Shown piece by piece: positions 10,554-19,653 of a stretch of DNA of 64,000 bases. The first letter of the stretch is position 1, and each line of letters starts with the position of its first letter. Location of the stretch: NCBI RefSeq assembly GCF_000007005.1, contig NC_002754.1; one strand, given 5' to 3'. The notes below the pieces were generated by a model, which saw nothing but the letters and a program-made list of their open reading frames with translations, made no database searches and was not told the origin of the DNA. The translations under genes were made by a program, and so were the position numbers. This DNA comes from Saccharolobus solfataricus P2. GTDB taxonomy: Archaea > Thermoproteota > Thermoprotei_A > Sulfolobales > Sulfolobaceae.

Positions 10554-11743
10554 CGGTAGACCCAAAATCGTATTATGAAAAATAATTCTGACAGAATAAT
10601 ATCGATTCATGATAGATAACAGGATTTATATGAGTATTAAGAATTCAGTTGAAGAAAGGTTTAAGGTGAGGGAGATGTGGTATTACCACGTGAGTAAGTG
10701 AGATGGTAACACCGGTACTCCCTCACCAAACATTCAACAAATAGGATATAAATTACTTTCCATGTTGAACTTCCAAGGGGAAAAGGTAGAGAAGGTAGCG
10801 AAAACTCTCATCCCCGCGTGTTTGTGGAACAACTCTGTAGAGAACAAGTCCAGAGCGTATGACGTATCCCCACAGACCGTGAGGAATTACGTAGAGAAAC
10901 AAGGGATGGAAGTGATTGAAAAGCTATTGGAAAGAGCTAGGAAAATATCCTTGAAGGTACTGAAGGGAGTCAAGGAGATAGATCTTTCAATAGACTGGAC
11001 AACCAAGACGTGGTATGGGAAACCAGTGAAAGGGAGCTCTGAAAAAGGAAACTCGTGGAACTACGCAACAACCAAGTATAAGGGGAAAGTACTTTTACTT
11101 GCCTTTATTCCGCAAGTGAACGGTATGACTAAGGACGAGATAGTGAAGGTTCTTGTGGAGCAAGTAATGGCAATGGGATTCAAGATAAGGTTGATAACTC
11201 TTGACGCTGGTTTCTACACAGTTGATGTGCTCAATTTCATTTCACAGTTTAAGTATATAGTTGCTGTGCCTGTTGGGGATGTTAAGGTGTATGAGGAGTT
11301 TGACGGGGATTACAAGACTAATAGTAAGAGGCATAGGAGGGATGAGCAGGTCAAGTTCAGGCTTCTCGTGTACAGCAAGGGAAAAGTGAGGAGAAAGAGT
11401 CTTGTTTATTTTGCTAGGGCTACTAACCTAGACCTATCCAAGAGGGAAGTGTTGGATTTATACAATAAGGTAAGAGGTCCCATAGAGACCTCTTATAGGA
11501 ACATTAAGGCTTTTCTTCCATTTACTGGTTCTACTAAGTTTGTTTTCCGCACGTTGATCTTCGTGCTGGCCCTTGTACTCTATATACCATATTCAAGGGG
11601 GAGGTGGGGAGAGAGGAGTTTAGATTATTATTAATTCTTTTATTTCCTGATTTATTCAATCCAGAGAATTTTACATTTAATCTAGTAGATACACTTATTT
11701 ACACTATAGATTTATTTTTAAGGAGGTGATTTTGGGTCTACCG
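10554..11743 (+). mobile_element. ISH3-family insertion sequence (ISC1200-like), 1190 bp, transposase decayed
   Basis: Perfect 16-bp terminal inverted repeats CGGTAGACCCAAAATC (10554-10569) and GATTTTGGGTCTACCG (11728-11743); TTTA target duplication at 10550-10553 and 11744-11747. Transposase (IDWTTK, LDAGFY, IETSYR) starts at ATG 10703 and is frameshifted near 10730 and 11580; natural stop at 11729. Confidence 0.9.
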
Positions 11744-11771: not shown

Positions 11772-14700
11772 CTTTCAATTCTATAGTAGATTAGCAACAC
11801 ATTGCTCATATAACTACACCATTCACTATTGCCTCCTTTCAATTCTATAGTAGATTAGCACAATGTATGACTATGGATATCAATGGAGCGTCGGCTTAAC
11901 TTTCAATTCTATAGTAGATTAGCCAAATAATCTAGCATTTTCTTCATAAAGTTCATTACATACCTTTCAATTCTATAGTAGATTAGCCTTAAAAGTGTTG
12001 GAGTTTGTGCAGTTAGTTGAATTTCACTCTTTCAATTCTATAGTAGATTAGCGTTATTCCTAATTGTTTTCGGAAATTATTTTGAGAATGAACTTTCAAT
12101 TCTATAGTAGATTAGCGCCGTACTGACTTCTCCCCTGCCAGCGAGGGTTCTCCTCATCTTTCAATTCTATAGTAGATTAGCTTCCCCACCATTATGTACC
12201 ACTATTATGCTTCCATTTATTCTTTCAATTCTATAGTAGATTAGCATGTTCTTTTTCCAGAACTGTAACTATAATTTTGTTGATACTTTCAATTCTATAG
12301 TAGATTAGCTATTTTTGCGTATTTACACGATTTATTTATTTCGCAGAATTCTTTCAATTCTATAGTAGATTAGCAGTGATGGTACTACGACCGTGAAAAT
12401 GAGTTGAAAAAACTTTCAATTCTATAGTAGATTAGCCATCACGCAGAATAATGGTTCAGGTAACTTTTTAAGGCTTTCAATTCTATAGTAGATTAGCTGA
12501 TTATATTCAAGGACAATATGTTGAAACGCCGATTTTATCTTTCAATTCTATAGTAGATTAGCAGATGCTATTGGAGGATTTCACCAGGTTGGGTTATAAT
12601 GTCAAATACTTTCAATTCTATAGTAGATTAGCTCAGAGTTTTTTTATTTTTTCTATTTGAAATTAAGCACGCTTTCAATTCTATAGTAGATTAGCTTGGG
12701 TGTTTTGTTTAGGTTTGAAAAAGATTATCTTATTTTCTCTTTCAATTCTATAGTAGATTAGCCCAACGGCTCTTACGCCCTCCTCGGCATGTACAACGGG
12801 ACGCTTTCAATTCTATAGTAGATTAGCAAGATACCACAACACTTGGAGTTAATGCATTATTGAATATGGATACATCTTTCAATTCTATAGTAGATTAGCG
12901 GAAAGGCTAATGGAGACAAAAAGAAGTCTAAAAAGCAGCTTTCAATTCTATAGTAGATTAGCTTCTTCAGCTTCTTCCCAACGCTATATGTGCTATTAGG
13001 TGTAACCTTTCAATTCTATAGTAGATTAGCCGGCACAGTACTACTATCTGAAAGTGTTGCATCTCCAAATACTTTCAATTCTATAGTAGATTAGCAACAC
13101 GTCCTTTTTCATTTGTAATATCTGAACCTGGAACTTTCAATTCTATAGTAGATTAGCCCTAATATCCTCGGGTACTTATAGAACCCTCCTTCTGGTCCTT
13201 TCAATTCTATAGTAGATTAGCCTGTTAGTAAGCCCCTTGCTACAACTCTATAGAAGTGCGGGTTTTAAACAGCTGTTTGAGAATATAAACATGGGGTAAA
13301 AAAGCTACAACTCTATAGAAGTGCGGGCTTTCAATTCTATAGTAGATTAGCATATTTAAAGTTTTTGCTCAACCAGTTAGGTAACAAGTATTCTCTTTCA
13401 ATTCTATAGTAGATTAGCAAAGCGGTTGTTTTCCAGTTCCAGAAACTGGAATTCTTATCTTTCAATTCTATAGTAGATTAGCGGATTTTTAAATGGAGTG
13501 AATTGATAAAATGATAAAGCCTTTCAATTCTATAGTAGATTAGCTTGGTGGGGCGATGAACGGCAACGATATGTTGGACGTCATCTTTCAATTCTATAGT
13601 AGATTAGCCTGGAAAACAAATTGAAGAAAGTAAAAAAATTGAAATTTTAACTTTCAATTCTATAGTAGATTAGCGATAGAGAAAAGTTTATAAAGGAGAG
13701 TGAAGATATGTATATCTTTCAATTCTATAGTAGATTAGCTCTAACACTTTATGATTTCAAGAACTTTGCAAGAAATAACTTTCAATTCTATAGTAGATTA
13801 GCTTAGCATGCGAAACAAATGAAGAATTCAGAAGAGAGTTAGCTTTCAATTCTATAGTAGATTAGCAAAGAATGAGGAAAGAGGCATTGGAAGGCATTGA
13901 AGAAGGTACTTTCAATTCTATAGTAGATTAGCTGGAGATTTAATTAGATATCATCACTTCGTTCCTTTCTCTCCTTTCAATTCTATAGTAGATTAGCCTG
14001 TTACGCCGGTGCTGGAGGGTAAGTTAGTTGGAGAGCTCTTTCAATTCTATAGTAGATTAGCTTTCCCAGACTTAGTAAAGGACATTTGGAAGGTTCTAAT
14101 CTTTCAATTCTATAGTAGATTAGCATGAAACAGAAAAAGTTAACATTTTAGACCACCAATTAAACTTTCAATTCTATAGTAGATTAGCAAGACCCCGACT
14201 TTTTAAGGTTTACAGATCCCGCAGAAAACTTTCAATTCTATAGTAGATTAGCATGAGGTTCGTCGTGTAGGGATTAATCCCGTGTCTAAAGCTTTCAATT
14301 CTATAGTAGATTAGCTAATTATCAATGGCAAACCGCATATAATTGGATGAGATTACTTTCAATTCTATAGTAGATTAGCTTTACTACACATGTAATAAGT
14401 ATGTTGATTATGGAATAGAATCTTTCAATTCTATAGTAGATTAGCTTGAACACGTGATATAGAACCAGTTGTTCTAATACGTTCTTTCAATTCTATAGTA
14501 GATTAGCAACAATAGCAATAGCTTTGCTTATAGTCGGTGTAATAATCTTTCAATTCTATAGTAGATTAGCTTGTAAAGACTAGGTAAAACTTTGTTATCA
14601 TAATAGCAGTACTTTCAATTCTATAGTAGATTAGCAGGAGGGGCTATACGTACGATCACGAATGTAACATTATCGTGACTTTCAATTCTATAGTAGATTA

Positions 14701-17557
14701 GCAGTATCTGGCTTTTCGACACAAAACTTCCTTTACCAACCTTTCAATTCTATAGTAGATTAGCACGACGATGCTATGTGTTGCACTGTATTTGATCACG
14801 GTTATCTTTCAATTCTATAGTAGATTAGCTACGGTTAAAAGTTGGCAAAAAGCTTAAATTTTTGCATCTTTCAATTCTATAGTAGATTAGCCTTATGAGC
14901 CTCTTTGAGATGTGTCTCTGACTTCTGACTTTCAATTCTATAGTAGATTAGCATAAATAAACTAGGTTTGTATTTATCACCTCCAACAATTCACTTTCAA
15001 TTCTATAGTAGATTAGCAAACGATAAATTAGCACTATATTATAACTATGATTCTACACACTTTCAATTCTATAGTAGATTAGCAACTGTAACTGGTAGCC
15101 TTGGTCAGGTGTTACTGACAGTGTCGATGCTTTCAATTCTATAGTAGATTAGCCAAAATGATATACATATAGTACCATCACCTAGCGCAAGACCTTTCAA
15201 TTCTATAGTAGATTAGCGGATATCCAGCAATTGCAACAGGTGGGTCGGGGATATCATTGCCTTTCAATTCTATAGTAGATTAGCTTTAACTATGACTTTT
15301 CAGAATACAACAATTTCGCCAATTCTTTCAATTCTATAGTAGATTAGCATGTATACAATAGATCATATGTTATATATAGAGAATGTACCAATCTTTCAAT
15401 TCTATAGTAGATTAGCTCTTGTACAAACTCTCATACACGTTCATTGCAAAACAGTTCATCTTTCAATTCTATAGTAGATTAGCTACACTGTTGCTTTCCT
15501 AACGCTCTACATCGCGTTGTCTTTCAATTCTATAGTAGATTAGCTGCAGGAGGGCGAGGAAGAATGATAAAGATGGAGGAAAACTTTCAATTCTATAGTA
15601 GATTAGCTTGTCCCTTCCATGGGCATTTGTCACTTTCACAAAACCTACTTTCAATTCTATAGTAGATTAGCATAAAAAAAGAATTATAACTTATTCATCA
15701 TTCTTTTAATACTTTCAATTCTATAGTAGATTAGCTTATAATCCCCGTGACACAGAAAGAATTTTAAATATCATAATCTTTCAATTCTATAGTAGATTAG
15801 CTAAACTAACAAGTAAAATTATAACTCCTAACGGAATTGCCTTTCAATTCTATAGTAGATTAGCTGACGATTATAACACTGAACATGAGTATGCAGTAAG
15901 TGAAGTCTTTCAATTCTATAGTAGATTAGCAGAATAATCAGTGATGAACAGTGTGAGAAACTTGTCCAAGTTTTCTTTCAATTCTATAGTAGATTAGCAT
16001 GATGTTGAAAATGGACTAAAACTTTTAGATGAAAAACTCTTTCAATTCTATAGTAGATTAGCTGAACGGAACATCTATTTTTACTCCTAACATCATTCAA
16101 TCACTTTCAATTCTATAGTAGATTAGCAAATAATGATAAATAAGGATGAGGTGATAGTACAATGAAATTCTTTCAATTCTATAGTAGATTAGCAGCCCTC
16201 CAAAATCGTAAAACCTTGAATATATGAAGTTAAATTTACTTTCAATTCTATAGTAGATTAGCGTGCTGTAGGCTGTAGGACTGTCGAGGTAGCGTTTGAA
16301 GCTTTCAATTCTATAGTAGATTAGCAGAGTTAATAAACATTTCGAATCCCCACGCTAACGAAAAGCTTTCAATTCTATAGTAGATTAGCACAAATAACGA
16401 AACGAATAAATATAATAAATTATGAATACTTTCAATTCTATAGTAGATTAGCTTGGTGAACCGGTGATAATATTCGTTACGGCGTCCAATACTGTCTTTC
16501 AATTCTATAGTAGATTAGCCCTTACCCTTCAGGAAGCTGCAGAAGATGGTGGAGTACACTTTCAATTCTATAGTAGATTAGCCATCCGTTACGCTGAGCA
16601 TACTAAGATCTGTCCTATTTGCCATACTTTCAATTCTATAGTAGATTAGCTATGGGGGTCAGTGACACTTATTCCACCGTTCAGTATTTCTTTCAATTCT
16701 ATAGTAGATTAGCTGGAATTTTGAATTTTTTGCACCGCTCCAATTATTATTTGGCTTTCAATTCTATAGTAGATTAGCTTGTCTGTCGGTGAAGCAGTAG
16801 TATTTCTAAGAGGCCGTCCCTTTCAATTCTATAGTAGATTAGCTCTACTTCTGTCTTCTTAGCCATTCAGCTCACCTTTGCTTTCAATTCTATAGTAGAT
16901 TAGCGTAAGAATAATTTTACAAAATCTTAGTAATTATATAGTTTATATCTTTCAATTCTATAGTAGATTAGCCCTCGCTTTAACCGAGGTGTCTCGGTGA
17001 CGCTTGCTCCGTCTTTCAATTCTATAGTAGATTAGCAGATTGGTGTATAGTAACAGAAAAGCAGACAACGAAAGGACTTTCAATTCTATAGTAGATTAGC
17101 ATGTTAGTTATCGGCGTTATAATGGGTATCGGAATCGGTGTAGCTTTCAATTCTATAGTAGATTAGCCTATTTTTGTCAATAATTTTTTTATTTTTGCAT
17201 TTTTCGAAATCTTTCAATTCTATAGTAGATTAGCGTAATCTTATTTCTGCGGTAAATTGAGATTATAGATGGTACCTTTCAATTCTATAGTAGATTAGCA
17301 TCATTTATGCACATTTCAACTCCATTTCCAATATGAATCTTTCAATTCTATAGTAGATTAGCCCACGTTTTTTGTCTTAACTTTAATTGATTTATTAGAA
17401 TCTTTCAATTCTATAGTAGATTAGCAAGGTCAATCCATTCTGGGGGCGTTAAACCCGCATCCCTGTCTTTCAATTCTATAGTAGATTAGCGGCAGTGTTA
17501 GAATACTAACGGGCGAAGAAGAATGGGTTTATTCTTTCAATTCTATAGTAGATTAGC
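11772..17557 (-). CRISPR. CRISPR array, 89 repeats / 88 spacers; repeat GCTAATCTACTATAGAATTGAAAG (CTTTCAATTCTATAGTAGATTAGC on +); no leader
   Basis: Counted by eye: 89 invariant 24-bp repeats, spacers 37-48 bp except spacer 23 (106 bp). Orientation from the conserved ATTGAAAG 3' end. The leader side (>17557) runs straight into csa5 coding sequence. Count and repeat agree with my recollection of S. solfataricus locus F. Confidence 0.99.
13239..13327 (+). repeat. Nested 24-bp direct repeat pair GCTACAACTCTATAGAAGTGCGGG flanking a 41-bp spacer-like segment inside spacer 23
   Basis: Identical copies at 13239-13262 and 13304-13327; 15/24 identity to the host repeat but on the opposite strand. Confidence 0.95.
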
Positions 17558-17580
17558 AAGAAGAGAAGGAGGGTATCATA

Positions 17581-17970
17581 GTGAGGGTAGCCAACTTGTT
17601 GGCTGTGGGCTTCCTCTATAGCGAGTCTCCAACACTAGTGGATAGGTTTGCTAATGCCTTATCCAAAGAGGCTGTGACTAAGGTTCTATATGATGTTCAA
17701 AGGATTGTACAGATGGGTATTGATAGGGGTGAGATAGTGAGCACGACAACTATGATTCAAGGAAAGGAATATCCCGCTGTTAACGTGTCTTCAAGTGAGG
17801 GGAAGTACACGGTAGTGGGTTATCTACCGACTAACCAAGATATAGAATATTTTCTTAGGATGATTGAGGAAGATGTGTATTATGCTAGGAAGGCTGGTGC
17901 GTTAGCCATGAGTATAGCAAATAGGACTAAGTTAGTTAGTAAGAGTGAACAAGGTGGTGAAAAGAAATGA
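17581..17970 (+). CDS. csa5: Type I-A small subunit Csa5 (Cas11), probably 5'-truncated
   Basis: [25 protein letters not shown]...[13 protein letters not shown]; first gene of the I-A cassette. The frame is open upstream to a TAG inside the last repeat (17554-17556); GTG 17581 has GGAGGG upstream. Confidence 0.8.
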
Positions 17971-18932
17971 TAGGCGGTTCAGGTAGATTTTTAGTAAATC
18001 TGGAGTCGCTGAATGGTGTTGAGAGTATAGGGAACTTAACCAAGCACAGAACCGCTCCAGTTGTGTTAAAGACTTCAACCGGTTATTTAGTGAGATATGT
18101 TCCAGTGATTTCCGGAGAAGCCTTAGCTCATGCCTATCAAGCAAGCCTAGTGGATATAGCTAAAAAAGAGGGATTGCCTGTAGGTAATTTATCTTCTCAA
18201 TACGAGTTCATAAAGTTCTCAACCGATGAGGCGTTAAAGATTGAAGGGATAAAGGAACCCAAGGATTATAATGATGCGAGGAGGTTCGAGGTAGAGGTGA
18301 TGCTTAAGGACGTCATTGCTGATGTTGGAGGTTTCATGTACGCTGGAAGTGCTCCGGTGAGAAGAACATCAAGGATAAAGTTAGGTTATATGATACCGGC
18401 TTTAAGGGGAGACGAAATACCTGCACAACTAGAAGCGCAATTTCACGTGAGATTCTCAAATAAGCCTGTTAAAGGTTCTCAAGCTATCTTCAACGTGGAA
18501 GTGTCCTCTGCTCTCTACACGTTTTCGTTTGAACTTGACGAAGATTTGATAGCAGTTCCATCTACTGTGGGGGAAAAGGTTAAAGGCGAAGAGGAGTTAG
18601 AGAGGCAAAAGGCTCGAAGGGTTGACTCTGCAATTAAAGCCCTTTACTCTTTGCTAGCGGGTAATTTCGGAGGGAAGAGGTCTAGGTTCTTACCATCCAT
18701 GAAGTTGATGTCTTTAGTAGTGGTGAAGACTGATTTCCCATTCATACCGGAACCTGGGCATGACGATAGTTACATTAAGACCACTGTTATGAGGTTAGAG
18801 AAGGCTAAAAGTGTGTTGAACGGAAATGTAGCTAAGGTCTATGTGATTAACAATGAGGGTATAGAAGTGGGTGAAGGAGCTACAGTACTGTCAAGTGTTG
18901 AGGATTTGGTAGCTAAATTAAAGGAAAAGTAG
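17967..18932 (+). CDS. cas7: Type I-A backbone subunit Cas7 (Csa2)
   Basis: [53 protein letters not shown] motifs. Confidence 0.95.
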
Positions 18933-18947
18933 TGAGGCAGGGGAGAT

Positions 18948-19653
<706 letters not shown>

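Follow-up and report, generated by a model that had tools for sequence, protein, structure and literature searches.

Array F and its oversized spacer

The 64,000-nt window analysed here, from contig NC_002754.1 of Saccharolobus solfataricus P2, carries a CRISPR array in which one spacer of 106 bp encloses two copies of a different 24-mer, designated R'. This 106-bp interval is a fragment of a mini-CRISPR array of a mobile element, lying inverted in a leaderless host array. The features concerned were as follows.

11772-17557, minus strand: host CRISPR array of locus F type, with 89 identical 24-bp repeats and 88 spacers
13198-13221, minus strand: host repeat CTTTCAATTCTATAGTAGATTAGC on the leader-distal side of the unit
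13222-13238, plus strand: 17-nt half-spacer CTGTTAGTAAGCCCCTT, which together with R' copy 1 makes 41 bp
13239-13262, plus strand: R' copy 1, GCTACAACTCTATAGAAGTGCGGG, a repeat of a mobile-element mini-array family
13263-13303, minus strand: inner 41-bp spacer S1, matching a monocaudavirus promoter/5'-untranslated region (5'-UTR) element, with the protospacer-adjacent motif (PAM) CCA on its minus-strand side
13304-13327, plus strand: R' copy 2, the same as copy 1, abutting the host repeat with zero bases between
13328-13351, minus strand: host repeat on the leader-proximal side of the unit, containing a published transcription start site (TSS)

The array agrees with locus F of Sulfolobus (Saccharolobus) solfataricus, which has 88 spacers and no leader and is described in the literature as invariant in strains P1, P2, and P3; it is called array F below. 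Its repeat, which has the plus-strand sequence given above, read GCTAATCTACTATAGAATTGAAAG in the CRISPR RNA (crRNA) sense, that is, on the minus strand, ending in ATTGAAAG. Effector genes flank array F, those of type III-B on one side and those of type I-A on the other. The low-coordinate side has cmr genes (type III-B) together with genes for an ATPase and a transposase, and the high-coordinate side has csa5 followed by cas7, cas5, cas3, and cas6. The transposase gene, of insertion sequence (IS) DDE type (nt 10762-11634), adjoined the old end of the array. Csa5 started 24 nt past the last repeat (17558-17581), leaving no room for a leader, and neither a leader, an adaptation gene nor a second array was found in the 64-kb window.

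The modal spacer length of array F was 41 bp. While 87 of the 88 spacers measured 37 to 48 bp, spacer 23, counting from the low-coordinate end, measured 106 bp (13222-13327) and had an internal repeat, and so could not be taken for an ordinary spacer of this array. Reading of nt 13198-13351 confirmed the predicted order of host repeat, 17 bp, R', 41 bp, identical R', and host repeat, with its period of 65 bp. The two R' copies, 65 bp apart, were the sole copies in the window with up to 7 mismatches allowed. The phase of the array was kept exactly (2 x 65 bp), and a perfect duplication of R' at the array period cannot be chance. In form the interval agreed with a product of ectopic integration, namely a 41-bp insert between identical 24-mers, the host repeat being also of 24 bp.

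The original prediction had placed the 24-mer on the opposite strand to the host repeat by its identity of 15/24. The figure was correct, but identity on the same strand was 14/24, because R' and the host repeat share the palindromic core CTATAG; identity to the host repeat therefore cannot orient R', and this way of orienting it was rejected.

R' belongs to a family of mobile-element repeats

No exact match to R' was found in 185,579 species-representative genomes (GTDB) or in IMG/VR. With a degenerate pattern covering the repeats of R' and of the plasmid pKEF9, used for scans of the genomes, IMG/VR, and JGI metagenomes, zero loci were obtained in the same genomes and 35 in the metagenomes; one IMG/VR match was rejected on reading as a chance hit in GC-rich DNA of bacterial type. 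The metagenome loci, on contigs from hot springs, were arrays of 1 to 9 repeats, identical to R' or differing at 1 to 3 positions, with spacers of 33 to 45 bp, and the exact 24-mer with the same boundaries was present in arrays on contigs L008, L010, L015, L024, and others. These exact copies bear out the proposal that the 24-mer came from a foreign CRISPR; judged by sequence comparison, R' is established as a genuine CRISPR repeat of foreign origin.

Plasmids carried related repeats. A Sulfolobus plasmid repeat ending in GTGCGGG, mentioned in the original prediction, proved to be real: the repeat of pKEF9, GTTGCAATTCCCTAAATGTGCGGG, shared 17/24 positions with R' on the same strand (P about 1e-5, from shuffles), including the common end GTGCGGG, and that of pXZ1 shared 21/24. 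The plasmid pNOB8 was also considered as the one meant there and rejected, its mini-array repeat being host-like (23/24) and unrelated to R'. In pXZ1 the family was represented by a leader module and a single repeat (L042, nt 350-373), which overlapped the annotated end of the plasmid's large open reading frame on the other strand. The pKEF9 array has been described in the literature as exceptional in repeat structure, transcribed and processed, and is said there to be without a leader.

Every array had, abutting its first repeat, a conserved module some 120 nt long, ...GTGGGGCACGCACCCCCACGTGAA..GCGGACAGATGCGGAC....GGTATATAAACTTTCA; this module contained a GTGGGGCACGCACCCCCAC element and a TATA box, and was present in pXZ1 as well as in pKEF9, where the akin upstream module read GTGGGGCACGCACCCCCACGTG ... 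TATAAAAACTTTC. The arrays of contigs L014 and L032 were otherwise identical and differed only in the module-adjacent spacer. This turnover at the module side indicates that the module behaves as a leader, which sets the sense of the R' family as GCTACAAC...GTGCGGG. The predicted transcribed sense of R' is thus the plus strand of the window, antisense to the host array. The unit itself was without the family leader: no leader motif was found in the window, and the 17 nt before R' were unrelated to it.

In the collections searched, the R' family appears to be confined to viral and plasmid sequences. Carriers included SMV1-like monocaudavirus contigs (L037, with about 92% identity, L009, L012, and L048 from IMG/VR) and bicaudavirus-like metagenome contigs; contig L034 had a MoxR-ATPase/VWA gene pair that is annotated in SMV1 as well. 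The genomes of the cultured viruses SMV1-4 were searched, and no R'-type arrays were found in them. The family repeat GCTRCAACYCTATASAAGTGCGGG and its relatives were located on L006-L040 (metagenome), L048 (IMG/VR), L004 at nt 18560-19069 (pKEF9), and L042 at nt 285-377 (pXZ1). On many carrier contigs (L008, L012, L013, L019, L031, L032, L035, L037, and L038) two or three R' arrays stood apart from one another; every one of them was preceded by a leader copy, and some pointed in opposite directions. The spacer GACTACTTCGACAGTAATAACGACCTCTTAATGCTCCTCC recurred in different arrays and contigs of the family.

The inner spacer and its polarity

S1 matched the monocaudavirus SMV4 over its full length at 92.9% identity, with 8 places per genome; matches were also present in SMV3 (6 places), SMV1 (3), and ATSV (1). 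The inner 41 bp are therefore a true virus-derived spacer. The target sites were located directly upstream of annotated ATG start codons and had TATA-like boxes, which points to a repeated promoter/5'-UTR element as the target. TGG followed this element at each of the two SMV4 sites matched over the full length, which puts 5'-CCA exactly at the S1 boundary on the minus strand of the window, whereas the plus-strand side of the target read ..ATAT, with CCN, TCN, and GTN all absent. Exact scans of IMG/VR found neither the variable core of S1 nor the 17-mer, and the latter was also without a match among viruses, plasmids, and the local target set. Searches with the outer 41 bp against phages and with the whole 106-bp interval against plasmids returned noise only.

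With the leader giving their orientation, spacers of the R' family were compared with SMV1, with the SMV-like loci of IMG/VR, with the contigs from metagenomes, and with two plasmids. Protospacers were obtained for 14, with CCN on the leader-proximal side in 11, a flipped arrangement in 2, and an ambiguous one in 1. Both flipped spacers, m100 and m14, target SMV1; m100 was a clean case (41/42, with TGG downstream), and m14 is the likely second. In array F, read in the minus sense, 5'-CCN was found for 9 of the 12 matched spacers and none was flipped. A TCN motif for loci E and F was rejected, since our data show CCN and the literature reports the same motif for loci C-F. The PAM of the R' family is thus 5'-CCN, the same as that of the host array, though the host subfamily repeats differ.

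Given CCA on the minus-strand side and the CCN rule of the host, S1 agrees in polarity with the host array and runs opposite to the R' copies on either side. By its repeat, and by its spacer (41 bp, within the 33-45-bp range, SMV4 match, CCA), the unit falls within the R' family, but in polarity it departs from the family, S1 being flipped relative to R'. The proposed antisense adaptation therefore needs correcting: from the position of the leader, the unit as a whole is antisense to the host array, whereas S1 by its PAM runs with the host array, against the R' rule.

Variant target sites of R'-family spacers had GCA, TCA, or CTG at the PAM. Homologues of the target of spacer m85 differed just in the PAM dinucleotide, with CCA in L038 and L035, GCA in L008, and TCA in L015 and L020. 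From these alignments, the PAM variants resemble escape mutations against mini-array spacers, whose targeting depends on CCN.

Origin of the nested unit

Two-step nested integration, as put forward in the original prediction, is the origin that we favour, although it is unproven and we give it about an even chance of being right. In the first step, the CCN-type adaptation machinery of the host would have taken a 41-bp spacer, X, from the mini-array of an invader. The starting point of protospacer X would have been precisely the 3' end of one R' copy that chanced to be followed by NGG, so that in the host sense X would be the reverse complement of R' (R'rc) plus 17 nt. The 17-nt half-spacer, in the R' sense, would then be the 3' end of the spacer preceding R' in the donor mini-array. 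In the second step, possibly while X was still leader-proximal, Cas1-Cas2 would have inserted a new 41-bp spacer at R', and staggered cuts at its ends would have duplicated the 24 bp. The integration target contained in X, complete, functional, and adjacent to a host repeat, would have made this later insertion possible. Since the new spacer follows the host array in polarity, the reaction would seem to have been oriented by the host context and not by R'.

The two-step model explains the sum of 17 + 24 = 41 bp, the modal spacer length, as well as the boundaries, which are exactly those of the natural repeat, and the identity of the two R' copies. It also obeys the ruler of 36 to 43 bp seen in more than 700 spacers acquired experimentally in S. 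solfataricus. R' arrays themselves grow at the leader end with CCN PAMs, and the context that both adaptation models need, NGG following the 3' end of R', was found in 7 of 161 distinct R' contexts. Uptake of spacers at internal repeats has been reported for locus E (Erdmann & Garrett 2012, PMC3468723), which belongs to this strain and to the repeat subfamily of array F, and a foreign-leader-like spacer of that locus has been proposed as an alternative assembly site. The S. solfataricus Cas1-Cas2 has weak intrinsic site specificity in vitro. Taken with the uptake in locus E, this makes an ectopic integration plausible by analogy.

Several points weigh against this origin. None of the natural arrays searched had S1 or the 17-mer, so that no direct donor or precursor was found for either adaptation model, and the PAM of S1 was inferred from SMV4, which is 93% identical and not the true source. 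An unexpanded 41-bp allele was not found; the one other assembly retrieved, GCA_900079115.1, was identical to the window in this segment, in line with the invariance of the locus in the literature. If R' had directed the integration, the polarity of S1 would be a minority outcome, seen in 2 of 14 natural spacers. Specific integration by the S. solfataricus proteins in vitro requires a long leader and host factors, whereas R' is leaderless here, and array F has been reported as inactive in uptake.

Capture in one step is the next explanation in line, fairly unlikely in our view and yet a true rival to nested integration. Here one prespacer of 106 bp, made up of 17 nt, R', S1, and R' and cut out beside NGG in the mini-array of an invader, would have entered as one oversized spacer, S1 having been gained earlier, flipped, in the invader's array, with integration at a normal host repeat. 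A non-canonical integration target is then unneeded, nothing in the parts is atypical for natural R' arrays, with their 33-45-bp spacers and targets in SMV-like viruses, and flipped spacers such as m100 do exist there (2/14). Such a capture, however, breaks the 36-43-bp ruler of hundreds of acquisitions, and the 106-bp length is unique among the 88 spacers. Moreover, three coincidences are required, namely that remnant and R' add up to a normal length (about 1 in 8), that the repeats are identical (about 1 in 2, with 58 of 117 adjacent repeat pairs identical in natural R' arrays), and that S1 is flipped (about 1 in 7).

Recombination or repair in place of adaptation appears improbable; here illegitimate recombination or gene conversion would have pasted in part of a mini-array from a plasmid or virus that was integrated or resided in the same cell. 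Plasmids of the pKEF9 type do integrate into S. solfataricus chromosomes, and a 2015 review reports recombination between CRISPR loci as well as a plasmid-like 899-bp insert between repeats of an S. solfataricus locus. Against this, both junctions of the unit lay exactly on repeat boundaries, with hybrid repeats, flanking plasmid sequence, and a leader all absent; the array phase of 2 x 65 bp was exactly kept, and the R' copies were out of register with the host repeat positions, so that simple repeat replacement fails.

A crRNA-like regulator or anti-repeat RNA, CreA/Racr-like or tracr-like and kept for a present role, is very improbable, and the suggestion of a CreA/Racr-like function was not upheld. 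A mapped TATA-dependent promoter 5 nt upstream of R'rc, with a T6 run 29 nt on, makes a short RNA of partial handle and antisense R' conceivable, and effector genes of types III-B and I-A adjoin the array. S1, however, matches viral DNA over its whole length, with a PAM, instead of pairing partially with a host promoter; no target with a seed of at least 11/12 and an upstream CC was found in the 64-kb window in either sense, and no toxin-like small gene was adjacent. In addition, the promoter belongs to the neighbouring spacer and has been described as cryptic and Cbp1-repressed.

Finally, a chance pseudo-repeat, with R' as an ordinary spacer end and no foreign CRISPR involved, retains practically no weight: although about 0.5% of random window 24-mers reach at least 14/24 identity to the host repeat on either strand, it is refuted by the exact 24-mer, with the same boundaries, being the repeat of many leader-bearing natural mini-arrays. 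What probability remains is assigned to other or unknown routes.

If the two-step origin is true, this would be, to our knowledge, the first natural case of a captured, spacer-borne repeat serving as an integration site, and would show a way in which new arrays are seeded and how far the target choice of Cas1-Cas2 strays from the leader. Whatever the origin, the unit shows that hosts draw spacers from the mini-CRISPR arrays of viruses and plasmids, which adds a layer to the conflict among viruses and between viruses and host.

Transcription and present state of the unit

Several internal start sites, sense and antisense, have been reported in array F, and two of its promoters were tested in vitro (Blombach et al. 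2024, PMC10883916). The oligonucleotides of Supplementary file 5 of that paper were mapped onto the window to place these promoters. For the "CRISPR F internal sense promoter" the TSS mapped to the minus strand at nt 13332, a position within the host repeat that precedes R'rc by 5 nt, with two associated features.

13352-13361, minus strand: TATA box of the internal sense promoter, in spacer 24, ATATTTAAAG on the plus strand; the published control mutant was ATATGGAAAG
13298-13303, minus strand: T6 run where S1 starts in the minus sense, 29 nt downstream of the TSS

The transcript from 13332 started with GAAAG followed directly by CCCGCACTTC..., and the full start read GAAAG-CCCGCACTTCTATAGAGTTGTAGC-TTTTTT.... 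The T6 run could, from its sequence, act as an archaeal terminator for some transcripts. Transcription from the antisense promoter of array F started at nt 12495 (plus strand), which is 744 nt ahead of the unit; a T7 and a T6 run lie in the interval.

In the host sense, the unit would yield one long crRNA with a guide starting with antisense R'. S1 would be too far from the handle in the host sense and would lack a PAM-side match in the R' sense, and the inner spacer therefore looks non-functional; it is probably not made into a usable crRNA in either sense. The unit today thus appears to be a fossil, transcribed in the host sense from the internal promoter.

An antisense-R' guide that targets R'-bearing elements is a speculation. 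In its fullest form, which we hold to be improbable, it would amount to CRISPR against CRISPR: the first 24 nt of the guide, antisense to the mini-array repeat, would direct type I-A or III-B attack on elements carrying or transcribing R' arrays, or alternatively a short RNA (GAAAG, anti-R', and a U-run) would arise from TSS 13332, with the nested spacer recording the adoption of a foreign repeat by Cas1-Cas2.

Relation to known systems and earlier reports

The unit resembles the array of pKEF9, a conjugative plasmid of S. islandicus, in its 24-nt repeat (17/24) with the GTGCGGG end; the plasmid array has spacers of 39 to 43 bp and is carried by a mobile element without cas genes. Unlike it, the unit is chromosomal and leaderless and has one spacer, and its repeat is nearer to the metagenome and viral variants and to pXZ1.

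Off-target integration by E. coli Cas1-Cas2, creating neo-CRISPR units, was reportedly observed by Nivala et al. in 2018. With such units and with the events in locus E, the interval shares a spacer-sized insert, a duplicated target of repeat length away from the leader, and a protospacer consistent with the PAM. It differs from the locus E events, which used bona fide host repeats, in that the proposed target is a foreign repeat within a spacer and that a single ancient event without a precursor allele is concerned. Spacer 5 of locus E looks like a CRISPR leader of foreign origin in inverted orientation (Erdmann et al. 2013, PMC3839810), but, unlike R', it is leader-like and not repeat-like, and its duplication has not been described.

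Virus-borne mini-arrays, in the portogloboviruses SPV1/SPV2 and in ATV, are short, have a leader and no cas genes, and carry spacers against related viruses (Medvedeva et al. 2019, PMC6858448). The R' arrays on SMV-like contigs behave alike, as shown by the spacers m14 and m100 against SMV1. The search of Medvedeva et al. was limited to four host repeat families, A-D. In contrast to those arrays with their host repeats, the R' family was not found in the 185,579 genomes, and what the window contains is a captured fragment and not a mini-array in a virus. This fragment is part of a chromosomal array flanked by cmr and cas genes, and 9-10 of the 24 positions in its repeat depart from the host repeat.

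That the irregular spacer had been noticed in early papers, as the original prediction supposed, is probable. The 2015 review cites Lillestøl et al. for an irregularity of "half a spacer plus two atypical repeats", assigned to locus D, and puts the 899-bp insert in locus F. This insert was not present in the array at 11772-17557; the labels in that part of the review are irreconcilable with the window and may be swapped. The description fits 24 + 17 + 24 = 65 and 41 + 24 = 65, so that the irregularity of the interval was probably noted as early as 2006. No statement linking the atypical repeats to the pKEF9/viral mini-array family, or proposing nested integration, was found in the literature searched, with Lillestøl 2006 and 2009 outside that search.

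Other spacers of array F related to R' elements

One further spacer of array F matched R'-bearing contigs.

14830-14867, minus strand: host spacer 47, with targets at L014 14-51, L018 506-543, L019 260-297, and L032 2867-2904

The match was 38/38 with a CCT PAM, at a site about 127 nt upstream of the R' mini-arrays on these several metagenome contigs. By this alignment, spacer 47 is a trace of past contact of array F with the R' mini-array element lineage. The contigs targeted are from metagenomes of Yellowstone type, and a variant of the site on L033 has GCT in place of CCT.

Host spacer 16 (12763-12803) and spacer 5 of pKEF9 (L004, nt 19011-19044) had about 34 nt in common at about 91% identity. 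Spacer 16 was considered as a second capture from the pKEF9 array and rejected, since the 7 nt aligned to the repeat end mismatch. From their likeness, the host and plasmid arrays therefore both remember the same target.

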